From: Octopus sinensis
Lineage: Eukaryota
NCBI RefSeq assembly: GCF_006345805.1
Contig: NC_043000.1
Location: 65,534,001 to 65,598,000 of the forward strand
Direction of reading: 5' to 3'
Length of the DNA stretch: 64,000 bases
A program made the translations under genes and the position numbers. Shown piece by piece: positions 1-64,000 of the stretch. Each line of letters starts with the position of its first letter. Position 1 is the stretch's first letter. Under the pieces are notes generated by a model. It was not told where the DNA came from and did no database searches. It worked only from the letters and a program-made list of their open reading frames with translations.

Positions 1-160
1 GGAGTTGACATTTTCCGGTGTTACTGAAATAATACAGATACAAAGTATTATTTCTTATATCATATAATGATATTCCAGCAATAATTCTTCCGGTTAAGCG
101 TTGGCGGAACAATCGCAATGAAACGAGTTGCTCACTCTATTCTCCATGCTAACGGTGATG

Positions 161-540
161 TGTGGTATGGTGGTGTAAGGTGTAGTGGTGTGTGGTGTGG
201 TGTGATGGTGTTGGTAGGTGGGGGAGGCGGGAGTGGGGAAAGCACGGGTGGGGTGTGGGTTAGGCTGGGGTTGGGGGTAGAGGTGGGGTGTGCGTAGGTG
301 GAGGGTGGGGTATGTGGGAGTGAGTGTAAGGGATGGGGAAAGATAGGGAAGATGGGGTTGGAATGTATAGGGGTGGGGTGGGCTTACGAGGGAGAGGTGA
401 CGATGAAGGGAGGAAGGAGAAGGTGGGTAGGAGTGAAGAGAAGAGGGAAGGAGAGTAGGAGCAAGAGAGGAGAGGTGGGTGGGAGGATGTATGTGTGAGG
501 GGGTGAGAGGCGAGGGGAGGAGGTTAGATGAAGAGGGGAG
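161..540. repeat. G/purine-rich low-complexity tract downstream of the PLE endonuclease (C-rich on PLE sense strand)
   Basis: Dense GGG/GGGG runs (e.g. gggtggggtgtgggttaggctggggttggggg) grading into GA-rich sequence. Begins right after the GIY-YIG stop at 524 on the minus strand. Confidence 0.7.
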
Positions 541-960
541 GAGAGTTGAACTCATGTGGCGCAAAGGAGCGAAGAGAGAAGATTAATCCTTGTTCACGGC
601 GCAAATGGGAGTCCGGATGGCTCCTGTACAAGGACAATCCGAACACGGACAGGTGTTGCAAAGAGTGACCGGTAGAGCAGAAATGGCGCAAGACCGGGAT
701 GTCATTGCCGAGTCGGATGTCTCGGAGGTGTTCTGCGAACCGGTCAGCCAAGCGGCGTCCCGTTTGCCCGATGTATAGAGAATAGCGGAGAGAGCAGGAG
801 ATGCAGCAGATGATATTGGTAGAAGGGCAAATGAAGGAGTCGGTGATGTGATAGGGTCGATGATGGGTGCCGGTGAGGAGGGTGGTGTTGGAGAGGTAAG
901 GGCAAGTGCGGCAGCGTGGATGAGAGTGAATAAGAGAAATTGATTGTTTATAAAATCAAA
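524..960 (-). mobile_element. Penelope-like element, GIY-YIG endonuclease C-terminal remnant
   Basis: The ORF 524-751 frame extends upstream as RCRTCPY..TDSFICPSTNIICCISCSLRYSLYIGQTGRRLADRFAEHLRDIR. This is the PLE CxxC linker plus the (V)IY..YIG(Q/E)T..R..EH motif. In-frame stop near 960. Confidence 0.88.
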
Positions 961-1339
961 AGGGGAGATGTTGTATAGTGAAACTGTACACCCCGCCCGG
1001 TAAAAAGGGGTAGTGGCCAACCATTATAAATAGACTAGTAGCCGGTCAACAGGAGAAGGTTAGAAAGGTCGAGAGTACGTGTAGACTGTGTTAGTAGTCG
1101 TATCTGTGATGATATAGTAATTATACTGTGATACTGACTGGTTGTTATAACGATCCAACCCTTCGAGGATAATAACACTGTACGACTCGGGTTCGTACAG
1201 TGCCATGTAGATCCATTCTGTCGACGGTTTCGGAATATAACAATATCTGTCAGAGCGACAACCGTCGTCAAAAGACAGATACAAAAGTGGTAAAAGACCG
1301 CTTTACAACAGTCAGTAATATTTTTTCCATTCTATTACT

Positions 1340-1575
1340 CCTTCAGGTAGACGATGAAGTGTAAGGAATTGCCCGACAATTTGATCTATGTTAATCTGAA
1401 GCCATTTTGATTTCTTCTCAAAACCCTCCCAATTTCTGAATGTACTTTGTTGAGTAAGAGTGAATGATAAATTTTTGAAGCTATAGCTGTAAGAGTGACG
1501 CCTCTGTAGTTCTTTATGAGACTCAAATCACCATTCTTTGGAAATTGGAGTATGCAGCCTTCTGTCCATTTGTCA
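1340..1575 (-). mobile_element. RTE-clade LINE reverse-transcriptase fragment
   Basis: Manual translation DKWTEGCILQFPKNGDLSLIKNYRGVTLTAIASKIYHSLLLNKVHSEIGRVLRRNQNGFR shows the RT domain 0-1 motifs (KxGD..NYRGI.L, Q.GFR). Confidence 0.85.
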
Positions 1576-1849
1576 CTTGTAGATCTATAGCCAAAAGTAT
1601 GTATGTATGTATGTATGCTCCCTAGCCATGACTTTCGGAGGTTCTGAGATCGGTACGAGAAAGTTATCGAAGATGCTGCATTATGATATTAGTACCGAAT
1701 ACCAAATACGAATTTCATAGTTGCAAAACAACTTTCGTAAACAAACTGCTGTAAACCCGAATATGAAAGCCATTTTATTAACAAGATAATATCTGCAAGT
1801 ATCGGGACACACACGCGCGCGCGCACACACACACGCACACGCACGCACA

Positions 1850-2026
1850 GGCACCCACGTTGGGCTTCAACACAGTTTCCGTCTACCACATTCACTCACA
1901 AAACATTGGTTGCTCAGAGGCTATAGTAGAAAACACTTGCTCAAGGTGCCGCGCGGTGGGGTTGAACCTGGCATCGCGTGGTTACAAAGCGAGCTTCTTA
2001 AATGCATAATCGTGTCTGCTCCTATA
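1850..2026 (-). mobile_element. tRNA-derived SINE, 5' head (family A)
   Basis: The reverse complement reads B-box-like ggttcaacccc, then ggcaccttgagcaagtgttttctactatag...tggtagacggaaactg. The same sequence recurs at about 14.1, 31.3 and 38.3 kb. Confidence 0.75.
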
Positions 2027-10360: not shown

Positions 10361-11455
10361 ACCTGGAGAGTGGTTACATGACTTTCTGAAGATAGAAGTC
10401 AGGCAGTGGTGGCCAATGGTGCCACCTCAAAGGAAGCATAAAATAGTGAGTGGTGTTCCACATGGTATTTTCTTAGAACCACTGCTTTTCTTAGTGGCCC
10501 TCTCAGATATGCCTTCAGCTGTCCGGATAGCCACCCTTGCTAGCTACGCAGACGACACAAAAGTCTCGCAGAAAATACAAAAATCTAGCGATGTTTCAGG
10601 CCTGCAACAGGAGTTGGACGCAATTTACAGATGGGCTGAGGATAATAATATGCAGTTTAATGCTGGAAAATTCCAAGCTTTGCGCTACCAACTCTCAAAA
10701 TTGAACGAAAAACATACAGAGTACACTGGCTCAGGCAGTGGTGGGGGGTTACAATCCCAGTAACGAAATCAGTGCGTGACCCGGGTATCGACATGATGGT
10801 GACAGAGTGCAAACAGCTGGCTGGATCCTGAGAACCTTCAGAACCGGAGAGAAGGAAACCATGATGGTCCTCTGGAGAACATTCGTCCTCAGCCGCCTGG
10901 ACTACTGCTCCCAACTATGGTCACCCCACAGTGGGATATTAACAGCAGCCCTTGAAGCAATCCAGCGAAGCTACTCAAAGATGATCGTCTCATTGCAACA
11001 GCTCAGCTCCAGGAAAAGGCTAAAACAGCTAAGAATCTACTCTTTTGAACGAAGGCAGGAGAGATACGCAGTAACATACATCTGGAAGATCCTGGAAGGG
11101 ATTGTACCGAATTTTGGCATTGAAAGCTACACAAATGCCAGAACGGGGTTGCCACTGCACAGTGCCAAAGATCCCAGCATTGCCGTCGCGTTTCAGGACC
11201 AGTTACAGCAACAGCGTGGGTTTCAAGGGCTCACAACTTTTAATATTCCCTCAAATAGCCTGAGGAACCTACACAGACGTAGGTGTTTTCAAAACAAAAC
11301 TGGGGCTCTTCCTGTCGAGAGTCCCAAGTGAACCTACCTCGCGGTGGGGGACACAAATGAGGGCAGCGACATCAAACTCTCTTATTCACCAAATGCCACA
11401 TATCAAAGGAAGCTCTCAATATTAGCAGAGTAGCAGAACAGCGGTGCTATAGCAT
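10361..11455 (+). mobile_element. 5'-truncated CR1/L2-group LINE (RT C-terminal half and 3' UTR), frameshifted
   Basis: SGVPHGIFLEPLLF (GVPQG motif), YADDTK, LDAIYRWAEDNNMQFNAGKFQ, then AGWILRTF..LSRLDYCSQLWSP..LEAIQR..ERRQERY...WKIL. Ends at (TA)n. Confidence 0.9.
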
Positions 11456-14089: not shown

Positions 14090-16410
<2,321 letters not shown>

Positions 16411-20784: not shown

Positions 20785-23583
20785 TTAATTTGTAATACTC
20801 TGAAAATTTTCTGTTTGTCTTTCATTAGACTTGAGATACTGCCGTGCAATTTCTAAATCTCTTTGCTGTTCTTTTAAGATTTCTTTCAGTCGTTTAATAC
20901 GATCAGAAGAGTCACAAGAGGAACCTATTAATGGTAAGTTATTTTTTGGGGGAATATCAAGTTCAGTTAGTGGTTTTGGAGTGTCTGAAAATGTTAATCT
21001 TGGTGTTGTTTCTACTGCCTGGTGATAGTGAGGTTTGTCATGATACAACAATGTATTTATTTTTCCTTTACTTTCTTGTTGTTCATTACAAACTTTTATA
21101 TCAGGTTTTCCAATAAATGTTTCGCTTTTTAATTTCTTCTTTTTATCTATTGGATACATTATTTTATCAGTTCTAAAACCATTGTTGAATTGCTTTGAAT
21201 CTTCTGACTTAAGGTTTTTGTTTAATTCACTAGAAGCAAATTCTTTCTTTTTTGAGTATTTTGTGGTAATTTTTTCTCGTATTCCTTTCAGAACAGTCAT
21301 CCTTGGAGATGATATGTCTGTCTTCACTTTTTTCTTCAAATAATTTATCTTTCCATGATTTACAGGTTTCTTTGAAGGGCAGCTAACACATCCTACACAT
21401 TTGCATTCAGAACCAACACCATTAGCAATAGCTTTCATCTTAGACTTTCGGCAGTATTTTTTCCTTGTATGAGAACATTTAGCAATTTCAGGAATAATTT
21501 TCCAATAGAAATCTATTTCACCACTTCTTGGAACAATTCCAGTTGTAGACCCTAACTCACTGAGAAAATTATGACGACATTCTTTTGAACATTTTTCTGA
21601 AGTTTTGACTGTAGCTAAGCTATCATTGGTATTCATTAAGGAGAAGTCACTAGGAAGATTTAATTTGGGAACAACAAGATAACAACTAAAGCAGCGTGCT
21701 AATTCCCTAGAGACATAGCAGTGGCTGCTGATTTTACCCCCAACCCCACCTGACAAGTCGCAACACTTTTTGGATTTATCTGTATTGACTGTTGAACTGC
21801 GACAAAGTCCAAGATATTTAAAAAAGCTGTTAAGTTTCCGCTCCTCATCAGTAATAGGCTTTAAACTTTCAAAGTCATTTGCATGGCAACTTACAGTGAT
21901 ATCTTCCCTACTGATAGGTAAATTATTATTTAACACTGACTTGGATTCCCTAAGTGGTTTACTTGCTTTGATTTTTTTAGGTTTGTTGTCCCGCTGCTTT
22001 TTATTTACAAATTTGGGAGTCTTTTGAGGAGGTCGTCCTCGTGGTCTTTGCAAACTTGGTTTCCGTTTTGTTTTCACATTTTCCTTGGATTCTATTGAAA
22101 TTTTACCTGAAATATTAAGACCTAGCTTTGACGGTTTAAAACCTAATGTTGAAGGAACTAAATTGAGATCACATTTGTTTTCTGAATTGTCAGCAAGAGA
22201 ATATATTGAGTCTATCTTCAGGGCAAGTGGAGGGTCCGAACAATTGCCTGTAGTGTTTAGTAAAACTGGGTTTGTCAAAACAGAAGTGTTACCAAACGCT
22301 CCCTGAGTAAAATGAGATGAATTATGAGTGATGGGGTGGTTATGAGGGACAGGATTTATTTGGTGTGCTTGAGAAACTGGATTACTGTTGTGCTCTCGAG
22401 TACCTGGATTTATGTATTGCCCATAAGGAGAACCGAGAGCAAAATTCGAGTCAACTGGTTGAGATCTTTGTAATGGTAGAGTTTGGTTTTGAAATTGGCT
22501 ATAATCTATAGAGGGAGAAGTAAAACAGTTATGGGAAAGAGGACTATAAAACATTTGGAGTTGATTTGTTTGATTAAGAGTAGGATGAGGATTTGGCAGT
22601 GAATGAAGAGCCATGTTAGGATGATAAAACTGTTGAACAGGAACATATTTAGACTTTCTCACTTGATTAGAGCATGTGTTTTTTGATTCAATGTTTGTAA
22701 AAGGTTGTGGAACAACTTGAAGTGTCAGGTTTAATGGTTGTGACATTGTAGCTGTGTGATCAGAGAGTTCCGGTTTTGAATTGTATGAAGAAAAGATCAA
22801 TGGAGATGGCATTGAGGGAGAAGTGGTCAAGATATTATTGGAATTAGAATGAAACATAGAAGAATGTGGTAAAGACATTTTTATATTTGATGAAATTTTA
22901 TCACCTTTGAACTGTTTGAAGTTTTGACTTGCAAGAGCTGGTTCCCGATGGAGATCAGAATTGACATTCTTTTTTGAATTTGTTATAAGGGAAGCATTGT
23001 TTGGAACAATAGTTGCCACCGGTATCAGTTTTGTACAGTCATTTCCAAAGAATGTTTGTGATGCTGGTTTCATAAAGCTATTTGATTTTTCCCCAGCAGT
23101 AATCACATAAGTGTCTGATTTTGGTTGTGAGACAGAAGATTTAACAAAAATTAATTGTTGAGCAGATTGTTGATGTAAGTTGTTTTTTCCAGCAACCTGG
23201 CTACTTGAGCACAGAGGAGAAGAATTAGAAGTTGATGAAACAGGTTTCAAGGTTTGAGACATTAATGAAGTAGCTGTTGGATTAACAAATGCTACAAGTG
23301 GAGTAGTAACACAAGGAAGATGCCCAGTGGTAGACTGCAAAGAAGACCCAGCTAATGGTACACACTCAACATCTGATGTCTTTTTCATGCTTGGAAATGA
23401 AGACTCACGAGGAAATAGTTCTGTAAAGTTTTTTGTCTCAGAACTGAGTATCATGTCCCCTTTGTTTTGAACAGAAGGATTCATCCTGATAGTATCTCCA
23501 TTGTAACAGACTGTGTTCAGTTGACTGAAAGATTTTAGTTTCATCACATCAATAGGTCTTGAAATCAAAGTTAGAGAATCCAT
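20785..23583 (-). CDS. Large single-coding-exon nuclear protein (about 932 aa from ATG 23583): S/N/P/Q-rich N-half, AT-hook, Cys-rich block, Lys-rich NLS-like regions, LRIF1-like C-terminal coiled coil
   Basis: 2.85-kb uninterrupted frame in AT-rich DNA. First in-frame ATG (MDSLTL) is at 23583, with in-frame stops upstream at 23683-85 and 23722-24. AT-hook QRPRGRPPQK. C-terminus DRIKRLKEILKEQQRDLEIARQYL. No transposase or RT motifs. Confidence 0.85.
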   Translation of the reverse strand: MDSLTLISRPIDVMKLKSFSQLNTVCYNGDTIRMNPSVQNKGDMILSSETKNFTELFPRESSFPSMKKTSDVECVPLAGSSLQSTTGHLPCVTTPLVAFVNPTATSLMSQTLKPVSSTSNSSPLCSSSQVAGKNNLHQQSAQQLIFVKSSVSQPKSDTYVITAGEKSNSFMKPASQTFFGNDCTKLIPVATIVPNNASLITNSKKNVNSDLHREPALASQNFKQFKGDKISSNIKMSLPHSSMFHSNSNNILTTSPSMPSPLIFSSYNSKPELSDHTATMSQPLNLTLQVVPQPFTNIESKNTCSNQVRKSKYVPVQQFYHPNMALHSLPNPHPTLNQTNQLQMFYSPLSHNCFTSPSIDYSQFQNQTLPLQRSQPVDSNFALGSPYGQYINPGTREHNSNPVSQAHQINPVPHNHPITHNSSHFTQGAFGNTSVLTNPVLLNTTGNCSDPPLALKIDSIYSLADNSENKCDLNLVPSTLGFKPSKLGLNISGKISIESKENVKTKRKPSLQRPRGRPPQKTPKFVNKKQRDNKPKKIKASKPLRESKSVLNNNLPISREDITVSCHANDFESLKPITDEERKLNSFFKYLGLCRSSTVNTDKSKKCCDLSGGVGGKISSHCYVSRELARCFSCYLVVPKLNLPSDFSLMNTNDSLATVKTSEKCSKECRHNFLSELGSTTGIVPRSGEIDFYWKIIPEIAKCSHTRKKYCRKSKMKAIANGVGSECKCVGCVSCPSKKPVNHGKINYLKKKVKTDISSPRMTVLKGIREKITTKYSKKKEFASSELNKNLKSEDSKQFNNGFRTDKIMYPIDKKKKLKSETFIGKPDIKVCNEQQESKGKINTLLYHDKPHYHQAVETTPRLTFSDTPKPLTELDIPPKNNLPLIGSSCDSSDRIKRLKEILKEQQRDLEIARQYLKSNERQTENFQSITN

Positions 23584-23721
23584 TATAGTAGATTGAGTTT
23601 TTAATTTTTCTTCAGGTATTGATAATAAGTGCACAGAGCTGTTGATTTCTTTATTGTAAAGCTGCTGGTTTAAGCTGTTAAATCATTTTTGTGATTTGGA
23701 GATGGGTAGAAGTTTCCAAGG

Positions 23722-34700: not shown

Positions 34701-34937
34701 TAACTTTTACGAAAACGAAACCGATGTTGTGAACTAACATTTTTACTATTACAAGGTTCATCATTTAAACATTCCCCAGCCTTACATCCTGTAAATTTGG
34801 TTATCTTTAATTTCATTGAACTTAATTTATTCTAATCCTACTGTGACCTTCCTTCTTAAGTCTATTATCTGATATTTTCGACATACTTGACAAATTAACC
34901 ATACGTTAGCATTTTTCATTTCCTTTGTAACATCTTC

Positions 34938-35062
34938 ACATACATACATACATACATATAAACATACATACATACATGCATGTATGTATGCATACATACA
35001 TACACATAGATACATACATGAATACATACATACATACATACATACATACATACATACATACA

Positions 35063-35094
<32 letters not shown>

Positions 35095-35216
35095 AACATA
35101 CATACATACATGCATGTATGTATGCATACATACATACACATAGATACATACATGAATACATACATACATACATACATACATACATACATACATACATACA
35201 TACATACATACATACA

Positions 35217-35247
<31 letters not shown>
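34938..35247. repeat. (TACA)n array with a 134-bp higher-order duplication
   Basis: Variant series tataaa / tgcatgtatgtatgca / cacataga / tgaa appears twice (tataaacata at 34957 and 35091). Confidence 0.85.
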
Positions 35248-35248
<1 letters not shown>

Positions 35249-35789
35249 ATTCCCCATTGACAGGACAGGCGTTTTAAAAACTCTCGCCCAGTTTCTTACT
35301 TCAAACTAACAACTGCCACTTCTCAATAATTTCCGAGGAAAATATCTGAAATTTTATTTTTTTAGAAAGTATTTATTTTTTTTATTAAAAAAAAGTTGAT
35401 ATTTTCCCAGGATTGAAGACTCTTTAAGTATTGAGAAGTGGTACTGCACGAAGTCATAATAAAATTATTTTATTGAGCTTGAAATAAAAATCTAATTCCG
35501 AACAGAAACAATTTAAATCTTTTGTCATGAAAGTAGGTATTGTAAAAAAAAACAAAAAAAAAACCAAAAAAAAACCCATTTCAATCCGCCAATGTGAGGA
35601 GGGAAGAAGAGGAAACGGATGTTAGTGTATATTGACGACGTAGATGAAGTGGCTTCAGTTGGAAATAACCTAAGCACAAATTCGTTTCTTCTTGAACTCG
35701 TTATGCATGTGAATGATATAGCGATTTCTTGATATATTTCCTGTGCATGCTATAACAGCGACAAATATATAAAAATATATGAGGCTCTG

Positions 35790-36265
35790 GCAACATACTC
35801 TTTCTTTGGCAGTCATAATGCTTATGTCGAATGTGACATTTAAGTCCCATCAACGATTTGCAAAGAAAGCCACAGATGTTGCAAGTATGAGAATTACAGG
35901 TCAGTGCAGGTGGTATATTTGCAGCCGATTTTCTCCTTTGCTTTGCACCCCGAAGCCTGTTAATGCTGGTTGCAACAAAGTTTTTAATATCATTTTGACA
36001 CAACAATTTCCATTTTGTTCGTTCCAAGGTTTTTCGGCCAAAGGTGTTGTGAGCTATTTTCGTCTCTAAGAGGTTACTCTTCAGCTTGTCCTTATATCTG
36101 AGCCATGGTCGACCAACATTCCTGTGCACACTCACAGACTGGCTGTACATGAGGACTTTGGGTATTCTTTCGTCACTCATTCCGACGACATGGCCAACCC
36201 AGCGCAATGGTGGTTGTATAAGGAAGCTCTCAATTCCACCAATTTTACACTTGCTAAACAAGTCG
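35790..36265 (-). mobile_element. RTE (Bov-B-like) LINE 3' end
   Basis: GIESFLIQPPLRWVGHVVGMSDERIPKVLMYSQ..GRPWLRYKDKLKSNL..W followed by a terminal C2H2 finger CNICGFLCKSLMGLKCHIRHKH. Confidence 0.9.
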
Positions 36266-36574
36266 GCATATATATATATATATATATATAAATATAGGGG
36301 TGAAATATAAAAAATCAACGAAAATGCATATTGTAGATATAAAAAGGATATATATATATATACACACACACACACATACACACACACACACACATACTTC
36401 AAACTACCAGTTCAACACCTTTCTACTGACCATTCTCTTACGCACACGTGACCGGGACACACTAAACAAAAGACAGTCACTCCTACTATAAATTCTTCCT
36501 ACGACATTAAGCGACACAAAGTTCATTCACACATACACATATAAACAGCCAAAATTTCACACACATATATATAT

Positions 36575-39660: not shown

Positions 39661-39751
<91 letters not shown>

Positions 39752-39767
39752 ATATTATATATATATA

Positions 39768-39809
<42 letters not shown>

Positions 39810-40589
39810 GCATATATGGGTATAGGACGTCACCAAACACTAAACAACATGAAATACGAAAGCAAATGAGTTCAATACGCTAACAACGAGAAAAACAAAT
39901 GAAAAACAGGACAAGTAACATAAAAAACGACCCTTCATCAGTTGTCGGTTGTCTCTCTACTCCCCGTTTCGAGCATTGAACGACAATATGAGTCTTCGAA
40001 GACAGTTGCTCCCATATGTACCAAAATAATATTTGGGACTTATGGAGGGTCAAAGTTTGGAACAAAAACAGGACAGTGGAGACATACAAGGAAACCGAAC
40101 GAAAACAAACATGGAGGGTCATTAGACCAGAACGAGGGTAAAATTGCGAACGCTGGAGAAATACTTTCTTTGACAAGAGAATATATATAAGAGAGAGATA
40201 GGGTACGTGCTGTCGGCTGTCTGTCTACTCCCCATTTCGAGCATTGTTGGTAATGTTTTCCGTTATCCTGACAACACGTCTTTATTTTTCCGTTCGGAGT
40301 AGAGTTTTTTTTTTATCTGTTATGGTTTTGCCGCCAATTTTTTTTTCTCTCCTTTGGCGATACCACCAGATTGTCGGATGTTGTCGAAATTGTGATATTT
40401 TTCGCCAACCGATGTAGGATAATCAATGTATGTGTTCGTTCGCTTGTATGTTTTTGTTTTCGTCTTTCATGTAAAGTTTTTGTCATCCACTTTTCGTATA
40501 TATATTTGTGTGTTTGTGTATATGTATGTATGTGTGTGTGTGCGCGCGCGCATGTGTGTATGTGTGTGTGTGTGTGTGTGTTTCTTTAT

Positions 40590-57179: not shown

Positions 57180-57720
57180 TTCTCCTTTCTGGCCTTGAGA
57201 GGTCTAATTTCTCATGATTGGTACTTAGGCAATGCGTTATATATTCCAGTACCCCAATAATTACAGGTATAAACCTGAACTTGTAATCTGTAGGTTTCTC
57301 AATAGTTCAGCATAGGTATTTTCTTTCTGGATGATCTTCAGCTTTATGTTAATATCCGCTGGGCAGCTGATTTCCACAAGTGTACACAGTTTCTCTTCGC
57401 TATTCCAAATCACTATGTCAGTTCTATTATGCTTACATTTTATTGAAGTTTTTACAGGGACATTCCACCAGTACTCCTTATTTTGAGTGGCTATGGTTTC
57501 TACCATACTGTGGGTTCTTATTCCTTTGTCTCCAGTGTTTTCATTTCAACAGATTTCATACAGCGTCCAATTTTCGGACAACCTCTTATGCTGTGGGTGA
57601 TATATTCTGTGTTAACTCCACAAAATCTGCTTCGGTTAACCGATTTTGGTACTTTTCCTGCGTCTCTATTCCTTACATGCAGCAGGTATTTGTAGACGCA
57701 TACCCTTCAAAGTGGAAGTT
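57180..57720 (-). mobile_element. RLE-type non-LTR retrotransposon C-terminus (zinc knuckle plus restriction-like endonuclease)
   Basis: (C>S)RFCGVNTEYITHSIRGC CCHC knuckle, then WWNVPVKT..KHNRTDIVIW..CTLVEISCP.D..KE..Y, the RLE (P)D..E..K motif. Confidence 0.8.
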
Positions 57721-58567
57721 ACTAATGTATGTATGTATGTATGTATGTATGTATGTATGTATGTATGTATGTATGTATGTATGTATGTATGTATGTATGT
57801 ATATGTGTATATGCGCATTCTCTTGACTGGAATATAAGGATATTGATCAGCCACCTGATCGATAGGAATATTGTTAAGAAAAGATATTACATGATTTTTT
57901 TAAATGTGCTTTTATTCTTTTTGTCATTCTTTGCAACCATTCAGCCTTTAAATTTCAAGAGCTTGCAGATTTTTGTTGACCCAGATATTGGTGATTATTA
58001 CAACCGATCAGATCTTGGAGGTTTAGAGGATCTTTTTTTCATTTATTAGGTAAATTGCAAATCTTCTACTCTTGACTGCAGAAGCATAGCCTTCGAAATA
58101 TGGCGAATGCAAGAAAGGCTATACTTAATGCTATTTTTAGTATCATCCTTAAGTTTACGAGACATGCTCGTGCATAAGTTTTTCTAGCTTTTGATAAAGC
58201 GCTCCTTTTAAAGGGATATGTTGTGGTATGCAGTCCATTCATTGTGAGATCTTGTGGAATGTCATCAGCAGGTGAGTGTTTTATGAGGTTCGCTACCGTC
58301 CTGTAGAATGCATGTATCCATGTATGTATGTATGTATGTATGTATGTATGTATGTATGTATGTATGTATGTATGTATGTATGTATGTATGTATGTATGTA
58401 TACGCACGCTTGTGTATGCATGTACGTACGTACATATATATGTATGTATGTTTTTTCCTTCCTATCAGGAATTTTAGTATAAAAATGGTCTTGTTTTCTA
58501 CATGATCTTTTGTTCAATCATTTTCCCTTTAAAGTTTTATTGTCCCAGACATTGGAATTATCTATTC

Positions 58568-61590: not shown

Positions 61591-62034
61591 CGTACACTGT
61601 CTGAACTATCTGCTATCATATTGAACTATCTGCTCATTGAAATAATCGTATAAGTAACCAAGTATTCCGCATACACGTGTACCATTAAAGTGACCATCAG
61701 TATATGACAAGACTGTAACTTTGAATTATAAGTACAATCTATCCAACGGCTCTCCACTCACTTTGCGTCAGCACAATTTCACATAGAAGGCTTTGATTAA
61801 CCCATGGCTACGGTAAAAGATGCTTGTTCAAGCTGCCCCACAGTAAGAACGAAGCGTCGACCTCATGATTGCAAAGCGAACATTCTAATCATTCGGCTAT
61901 GCTACATCAAAATATAACAAAAGCTTTATAATTAATACATATAGTTAATCAATTATAGTGTTAAAATCTTTGATTGATTAGTAGGAATTTATGCATTACT
62001 ATTAGTATTGAATTACGCATACACACATATACGC

Positions 62035-62296
<262 letters not shown>

Positions 62297-62892
62297 CGAA
62301 CAGTTGAGATTTCAAACAACAGAAATGCTATTCAATACATATAGAAAAATTCATTTAATCTGAAAAACTCTGATGATCCATTCTGCTGCTACTCAGGTTT
62401 TCTCGCTACGTATGATCTTTCAGTCAACAAAAAAGATGTCTCCAGAATGATCATATGTAGTGAAAAGATTCAAGTTGCGTCGGAGTGAATTGCAGATTTT
62501 TAACGAATAATAATTTATCATAATATATATATATGCATTATGACATAATATAAATTTACCATGCTCTTTCATCGACCGTAGACTGAAGATGAAAGCAATT
62601 TCGGTGCACTTATCATCTGAATTGCACACTTACCACAGCGCTACTGAGTTTCGATGTCGAGATTGAACGACAAATGTGCAAAATTAAACGAAATATTAGG
62701 TTAGGATGAACAAAACAGAGATAAAAAGATTAACTAGTGACGACTGTGCGAAGTGTAACGCTAAGAGAAAATGAGTGGGTAGCTGGGAGTTAGCCCTCCA
62801 ACAAAGAAAGAAAGAAAGAAAGAGAGAGAGAGCATGATAGATAGATAAATAGATAGAAAAAGAGAGGGGGTGAGATAGGTAGCTAGCTAACC

Positions 62893-62966
<74 letters not shown>

Positions 62967-63619
62967 GTGGAGAGAAAGGGAAAGACAGCGAGAGTGAGAG
63001 AGAAAGCGAAAGAGAGAAAGAGGGAAATAATCTGGAGCAGTTCAGAGAACAAAATGAACGAAGAAGGCTGGGCAATGGGATTAGAATCATATGAAGACGT
63101 AAAGGTATTGTGGCAAGGTTGCAATCGAATAGAGAAATGGAAGGGGAGAATAGATTGGAGCGCGAAAGGGTAAGACGGGAAAGTGCTAGAGAGAGAGGGG
63201 AGAGAGAAGGAGAAAGAGGGAGGAAGAGAAAGAGAGACAAAGGATGTGGTTGCTGAAAGCAAAAGTACAATGAAAAAAATATTACATGGCGTTACCATTA
63301 AAGAGAAGAAAAATTAAGCACGGAAAACAGATAAAGCACTGTGAAAAGTGCAAACAAGGTCATCACACTTTCTCAAGGTTATTTCAGTGTATCAATTAAC
63401 AGAAATGCGTACATACCGTAGCGTCACCGGAGTTTGGTGTCCAGACAGGATGACAACAAATATACAAAATGGAACGGAACATTAGTTCGTGAGGTTAAGA
63501 CGAACAAAACATAGGGCGAAATTAGAAAGGATGTATGTATGTATGTATGTATGTATGTATGTATGTATGTATGTATGTATGTATGTATGAATGTATGTAT
63601 GCATGTATGTAAGTAAGGA

Positions 63620-64000
63620 AAATAGGTTGCCCCCACCAAAAAAATTAAATTTGTAAACATGATCAGGGCTTTGCATCAAGATATGAAAGCTAGAGTTAAT
63701 TTTGGTGGTAGGCTCTCTGAATCTTTCACAGTGGAAAATGGAGTAAAGCCCTTGCTTTACTCCATTTTCCACAGACCCTGATGCACCCACCCTCTTTGCA
63801 ATATACTTTGCTGTTGTGTTGCCACATGCTTTACAAAACTCTGAGGAGAGTATTTATATAAAATATCGAACAACAGGGAATGTTTTTAATATTACCAGAC
63901 TGAAATTCAAAACGAAGGTTTTAACTTCACTCACTAGGGAACTTCTGTACGCTGACGATTGCGATCTTGTCAATCATTCTGAAACAGGTCTGCAATATCT
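63620..64000 (+). mobile_element. RTE (Bov-B-like) LINE RT region, runs off the window
   Basis: KFVNMIRALHQDMKARV..SESFTVENGVK[QG]..APTLFAIYF..KYRTTGNVFN..RL...TK..RELLYADDCDLV. Confidence 0.92.

Follow-up and report, generated by a model that had tools for sequence, protein, structure and literature searches.

A disordered, basic protein of cephalopods with a conserved C-terminal helix that resembles the tail of LRIF1

The gene described here lies in a 64,000-nucleotide stretch of the Octopus sinensis genome (assembly GCF_006345805.1, contig NC_043000.1, positions 65,534,001 to 65,598,000 of the forward strand). We refer to the whole of the analyzed stretch, which is AT-rich eukaryotic DNA, as the window. 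On its minus strand, at 20785..23583, is a complete, intronless coding sequence (CDS) of 932 amino acids plus a stop codon (20785-20787), identified from the open reading frame (ORF) and five cephalopod orthologues and encoding an uncharacterized, cephalopod-only protein. The ORF itself spans 20785-23634 and would specify 949 amino acids from an upstream GTG, or 932 from the ATG at 23583. In Octopus, in Argonauta, and in one decapodiform genome contig, the CDS runs uninterrupted as one exon. An initial annotation, made from the letters of the window alone, had noted that the end of this protein resembles the C-terminal helix of vertebrate LRIF1 and had proposed it as a candidate LRIF1-like adaptor or SMCHD1 partner.

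The 932-amino-acid gene is genuine. A search of 5.8 billion proteins recovered five relatives. The closest was 93% identical, in a cluster that includes proteins from Octopus bimaculoides (XP_014771713.1) and O. vulgaris (CAI9721570.1), the orthologue from Argonauta hians was 75% identical, and three squid- or cuttlefish-like orthologues were 35-38% identical. All of the named database copies are annotated as 'uncharacterized' or 'hypothetical'. In comparison with Argonauta, the ratio of nonsynonymous to synonymous substitution rates (dN/dS) over the whole gene was 0.21, at a synonymous rate (dS) of 0.61.

By sequence comparison, the gene is restricted to cephalopods in both database searches. 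A profile built from the six sequences found nothing beyond the known cephalopod relatives in the word-indexed database of 5.8 billion proteins, and a full HMMER pass of the same profile against 1.84 billion representatives added only one fragment and a bacterial repeat protein (P0007), a spurious profile match that we rejected as a relative. There were no informative neighboring genes in the 10-kb flanks in Argonauta and in the decapodiform genome.

The start of the coding sequence appears to have moved in octopods. Just upstream of the octopus ATG is an in-frame IPEEK (23605-23619, minus strand), and the decapodiform orthologues begin MPEAK. The octopus ATA codon at 23617-23619 occupies the position of the likely ancestral start codon, octopods start instead at MDSL, ~12 codons farther downstream, and approximately 35-50 N-terminal residues are missing relative to the decapodiform proteins. 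In Argonauta, the upstream frame is interrupted by a stop.

The region with the lowest dN/dS in the gene encodes an amphipathic helix close to the C-terminus. The helix, SSDRIKRLKEILKEQQRDLEIARQYL (residues 892-917; 20833..20910, minus strand), includes R898-L899-K900 and was delimited from the alignment, dN/dS, structure prediction with AlphaFold2 (AF2), and profile-profile alignment with hhalign. It is present where the initial annotation had placed it, on the minus-strand ORF of 932 amino acids, and its conservation in orthologues is strong: 20 of the 26 positions are invariant across the six cephalopod proteins, octopods and decapodiforms included. Read from the sequence, I896, L899, L903, L910, A913, and L917 have the a/d spacing of a heptad repeat. 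The helix has a dN/dS of 0.07, and a Cys-rich region described below has one of 0.09, with dS near the gene average in both, indicating that the constraint is at the level of the protein. AF2 predicted a helix at residues 892-931, with predicted local distance difference test (pLDDT) scores of 50-66, and this was the only region so predicted.

The octopod protein continues beyond the conserved helix. The initial annotation had the protein ending in a tail that finishes ...QYL, which needs correction. Another 15 residues, KSNERQTENFQSITN (20788..20832, minus strand), precede the stop codon in Octopus and are conserved in Argonauta, so that the 932-residue octopus protein terminates ...QSITN. 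AF2 continues the helix through this octopod-only extension. The squid-like orthologues lack it and stop directly after the helix, at ...ARQLLL. On the N-terminal side of the helix is a short motif, KPLTELDI (20953..20976, minus strand; PIALPQGDI in decapodiforms), in which L, D, and I are invariant among the cephalopods and which aligned to the segment that precedes the helix of LRIF1.

The remainder of the protein is variable and rich in S, T, N, P, and Q, interspersed with short blocks that are invariant or nearly so in the alignment of the six proteins. These blocks include PLVAFVNPTATS (23266..23301, minus strand), in which 11 of 12 residues are invariant and which contains the sequence PLVAF found in a motif scan, as well as IPVATIVPNNASL, QPLNLTLQ, and LKIDSIYSLAD. 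Two others, neither with a match in Pfam, are KLIPVATIVPNNASLITNS (residues 185-203; 22975..23031, minus strand) and LKIDSIYSLADN (residues 455-466; 22186..22221, minus strand). The alignment also contains basic tracts, the Cys-rich region, a variable K-rich linker, and the C-terminal helix. The protein carries a net charge of +51, and its basic residues cluster at 501-600 and 701-800. When the full-length protein was modeled with AF2 from a shallow alignment, the result was disorder throughout (mean pLDDT of 30) except for the helix at 892-931. Searches of Pfam with the full-length protein, its orthologues, and each of ten conserved blocks separately yielded only sub-threshold matches to the tail, and no relatives came from the PDB sequences when profiles of the full protein, the tail, and the Cys region were used.

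The Cys-rich region may be a zinc-binding module. It spans residues 561-735 (21379..21903, minus strand) and contains 11 invariant Cys residues and one invariant His in the pattern C-x27-C ... CxxC ... CxxxC ... CxHx5C ... Cx4CxxC. We regard the region as a putative zinc-binding module, possibly an undescribed one and limited to cephalopods. AF2 on the region alone gave a low-confidence model (pLDDT of 33).

The octopod proteins also contain an AT-hook, which the initial annotation had noted in the octopus protein. Its core, RPRGRPP (residues 513-519; 22027..22047, minus strand), was read from the sequence and lies inside a basic tract. With K and R residues on either side of RPRGRPP, the octopod proteins resemble AT-hook proteins of the HMGA type and their RGRP motif. 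Unlike those proteins, they have only one hook. The hook is kept in Octopus and Argonauta only and is not present in the squid-like proteins (P0003-P0005). Because it is not conserved in decapodiforms, the AT-hook does not define the cephalopod family.

With modest confidence, we interpret the terminal helix as a conserved partner-docking element on a disordered, basic protein restricted to cephalopods, and its likeness to LRIF1 as more likely the product of chance or convergence than of common descent. The intronless gene would produce a protein of ~930 amino acids that is basic, rich in S, N, P, and T, mostly disordered, and probably nuclear and associated with chromatin or DNA. The helix, of about 26-40 residues or three to four heptads and under stronger constraint than any other part of the protein, would most likely function as a short coiled-coil docking or dimerization module. 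It may link the middle of the protein (the basic tracts, the AT-hook in octopods, and the putative zinc module with its 12 Cys/His ligands) to a partner. Nuclear localization, zinc binding, and coiled-coil docking are each properties that we infer.

A serious but less probable alternative is that the protein is the cephalopod counterpart of LRIF1 (HBiX1), either as a divergent orthologue or through a homologous C-terminal module that docks on the hinge or flanking coiled coils of SMCHD1. The rest of the protein would then anchor SMCHD1 on chromatin by way of its AT-hook, basic tracts, and Cys module, and possibly contact HP1 through PLVAF. In published work, which agrees on this element, LRIF1 binds SMCHD1 through its C-terminal coiled coil, and it binds HP1 through a motif of the PxVxL type. 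A preprint reports that a coiled-coil mutant of LRIF1 (m1; R214E/L215A/K216E) abolishes binding to SMCHD1 and that binding to HP1 is lost when the HP1 motif carries V-to-D and L-to-E substitutions. No chromatin partner of SMCHD1 other than LRIF1 is reported to have been validated.

We compared the cephalopod proteins to mammalian short isoforms of LRIF1 and to the Pfam model of the family (PF15741). A C-terminal segment of human LRIF1 was used only as bait and returned 90 mammalian short isoforms, all PF15741, 30 of which were in the profile used for hhalign. The tails of the retrieved proteins carry the helix as the initial annotation had given it for LRIF1, and the pattern stated there, I.RLK..L.E....LE..R, fits both the octopus protein and LRIF1. 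The two proteins are also alike in their overall plan. Each is a long, disordered protein of a nuclear type, mostly low in complexity, in which a basic region precedes a short coiled-coil helix at the very C-terminus. They share the pattern E-[KR]-I-x-R-L-K-x-[VI]-L-[KR]-E-x-x-x-x-L-E-x-x-R, including the RLK triad, and a P-hydrophobic-[TA] motif ahead of the helix.

Several results weigh against chance or convergence and favor a relationship to LRIF1. Alignment of the full profiles with hhalign gave a probability of 60.6% (P of 8.3e-5) over 36 columns, C-terminus to C-terminus, and alignment of the tails alone gave 85.7% (P of 5.4e-6) over 22 columns. Residues 892-917 of the octopus protein were paired with residues 205-230 of the 233 in LRIF1, with R898-L899-K900 opposite R211-L212-K213. 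At the level of sequence, the match spans the RLK triad that is required for binding to SMCHD1. In each family it lies at the very end of the protein, and it reaches into the proline-containing motif that precedes the helix, which falls inside both the 36-column hhalign match and the Pfam match. Among the tails with any match in Pfam, LRIF1 always ranked first or shared first place. Controls with shuffled sequences also lent support. Against the LRIF1 tail model, the real score was equaled by 5 of 5000 heptad-preserving shuffles of the squid tail and 9 of 5000 of the octopus tail. Only one of 400 class-preserving shuffles of the columns equaled the hhalign score (29.0, compared to a null mean of 12.2 and a standard deviation of 3.3). 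Overall, the match beats 99.7% of the shuffles that preserve composition and heptads. We conclude that the residue-specific match is genuine at a P of ~0.001-0.003, for a single comparison that was picked after the resemblance had been noticed.

The scores do not reach those of a family member, however. The three decapodiform tails, taken in isolation, scored 17.8-19.6 bits against the Pfam LRIF1 model (E of 4e-4 to 1.3e-3; model positions 707-740 of 745), and the octopus helix alone scored 10.2 bits (E of 0.26). All of these are below the gathering cut-off of the family, 27 bits. The full-length octopus protein and its orthologues had no match to LRIF1 in Pfam at E≤10, and the octopus protein reached only 8.3 bits against the tail model of mammalian LRIF1.

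Scores of this size were also obtained with unrelated and artificial sequences. The same decapodiform tails matched Ribosomal_S15 equally well (E of 6e-4 to 2e-3), a match that is spurious. We made 20 shuffles of the tails that preserved composition, the hydrophobic (heptad) pattern, and the segment preceding the helix. One of them matched LRIF1 (E of 6.8e-4) and another matched DUF5945 (E of 1.1e-3); reversed and fully shuffled tails had no match in Pfam. Since shuffled controls reach an E of ~1e-3, the Pfam E-values are roughly a hundred-fold too optimistic for helices of this kind. The profile of the cephalopod tails scored 8-15.5 bits against mammalian LRIF1 and also drew 18 unrelated matches of 10-15 bits from 177,635 PDB sequences. 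In the other direction, the profile of the LRIF1 tails scored 11.9-13.7 bits against the decapodiform proteins, and its best unrelated match in the PDB was 13.2 bits. Database-wide, the LRIF1 match is at the noise ceiling.

These unrelated matches are generic short charged coiled coils, among them the exocyst protein EXOC4, designed helical proteins, and Ribosomal_S15, and they have an E/K/R/Q/L/I composition and heptad spacing in common with the helix. They score much as LRIF1 does against the cephalopod tail (10-15 bits in the PDB and ~20 bits in Pfam). In contrast to LRIF1, they match over 11-22 columns that are internal rather than terminal, and they have no common functional context.

Outside of the helix, there was no similarity to the mammalian short isoforms of LRIF1 or to the Pfam model. 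No alignment was found there by hhalign with alternative alignments allowed, or with the ten conserved blocks searched separately in Pfam. The HP1 motif is LRVCL in the LRIF1 sequences that we retrieved, and a profile of the box that holds it (DLRVCL) matched nothing in the six cephalopod proteins. The initial annotation had seen no clear PxVxL, and we agree: there is no canonical motif, and PLVAF (residues 95-99), the sole hydrophobic-x-V-x-hydrophobic motif conserved in all six proteins, is a non-canonical candidate. An alignment made by eye between FFKYLGLC and IFGLTKDLRVCL was dropped because the HP1-box profile found no match.

Other features likewise separate the two proteins. The cephalopod protein has the Cys/His region with its 12 potential ligands, to which octopods add the AT-hook. 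Nothing in the mammalian short isoforms that we compared corresponds to the Cys-rich region, and the Pfam LRIF1 model misses it. LRIF1 is encoded by several exons and its isoforms arise by alternative splicing of exon 2, whereas the cephalopod CDS is one exon. There were no intermediate relatives outside of cephalopods in the search of 1.84 billion representatives. We searched the literature for reports of SMCHD1 in octopus or other molluscs and obtained nothing usable.

Based on these comparisons, we consider chance similarity or convergence of charged coiled coils a more likely account of the resemblance than proven common descent. The proposal of a candidate LRIF1-like adaptor holds in part. 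Profile methods rank LRIF1 best or joint-best, C-terminus to C-terminus, and the helix is conserved in orthologues, in both respects the opposite of what the initial annotation had named as refuting the proposal. The matches to LRIF1 are confined to the helix, and the scores, all of them sub-threshold, fall short of demonstrating membership in the family. The protein should not be classed as a member of the LRIF1 family, and it is a reasonable candidate for working in an LRIF1-like manner. Tentatively, and on present evidence rather unlikely to be correct, one can picture it as the cephalopod equivalent of LRIF1, in which an SMCHD1-docking helix that bears the RLK triad and predates vertebrates would be carried on a different chromatin-targeting body, with the zinc module and the AT-hook replacing the HP1 box or acting alongside it.

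It is improbable that the helix is a short signal of some other kind (for instance, a leucine-rich nuclear export signal, a basic helix that binds nucleic acid, or a degron). The regular spacing of L899, L903, L910, I912, and L917 and the many basic residues are what such a signal might have, and the helix is short and the sole ordered element of the protein. However, nearly all of the 26 positions are invariant, including those on the charged surface, which is more than an export signal or degron usually needs, and the a/d heptad register is regular. The idea that the frame is a chance or non-functional one or a pseudogene, which would make the helix meaningless, is ruled out by the conservation data (orthologues in octopods and decapodiforms, and a dN/dS of 0.21 at a dS of 0.61), the 932-codon frame stays open in DNA of ~33% GC, and we found no points in its favor.

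Elsewhere in the window, we observed repeats and probable fragments of retroelements. A (TA)n microsatellite of ~2 kb (14206-16250; ~1060 copies, 85% matches) accounts for a bin in which the GC fraction falls to 0.04; the window contains no N, so this bin is not an assembly gap. Two ORFs, at 10807-11331 (plus strand) and 35701-36402 (minus strand), have by eye the look of the C-terminal part of a reverse transcriptase of the long interspersed nuclear element (LINE) type (for example, ...PLRWVGHVVGMSDERIPK...) and are probably retroelement fragments. Tetra- and dinucleotide microsatellites at 34827-35237 (minus strand), ~57700-57826 (plus strand), and 39700-39883 (plus strand) translate as MYVC or IYIY and create spurious long ORFs. 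At the ends of the window (1-2000 and 62001-64000), GC is raised (0.47 and 0.37) and GC skew is strongly positive (0.32-0.35). The ORFs there translate as low-complexity sequence rich in P/S/T/H or L/S, and the ends are therefore probably simple repeats.

LRIF1 is not known outside of vertebrates. If the cephalopod protein were its counterpart, the pairing of SMCHD1 with an adaptor would predate X-inactivation and imprinting, and the silencing module would be an ancient feature of bilaterians. Conservation of that depth would delimit the minimal docking helix, and the protein would offer a route into SMCHD1-type silencing in cephalopods. Even without a link to LRIF1, a well-conserved protein found only in cephalopods, whose Cys-rich module is unclassified and whose terminal helix is nearly invariant, is a target for the discovery of its partners.

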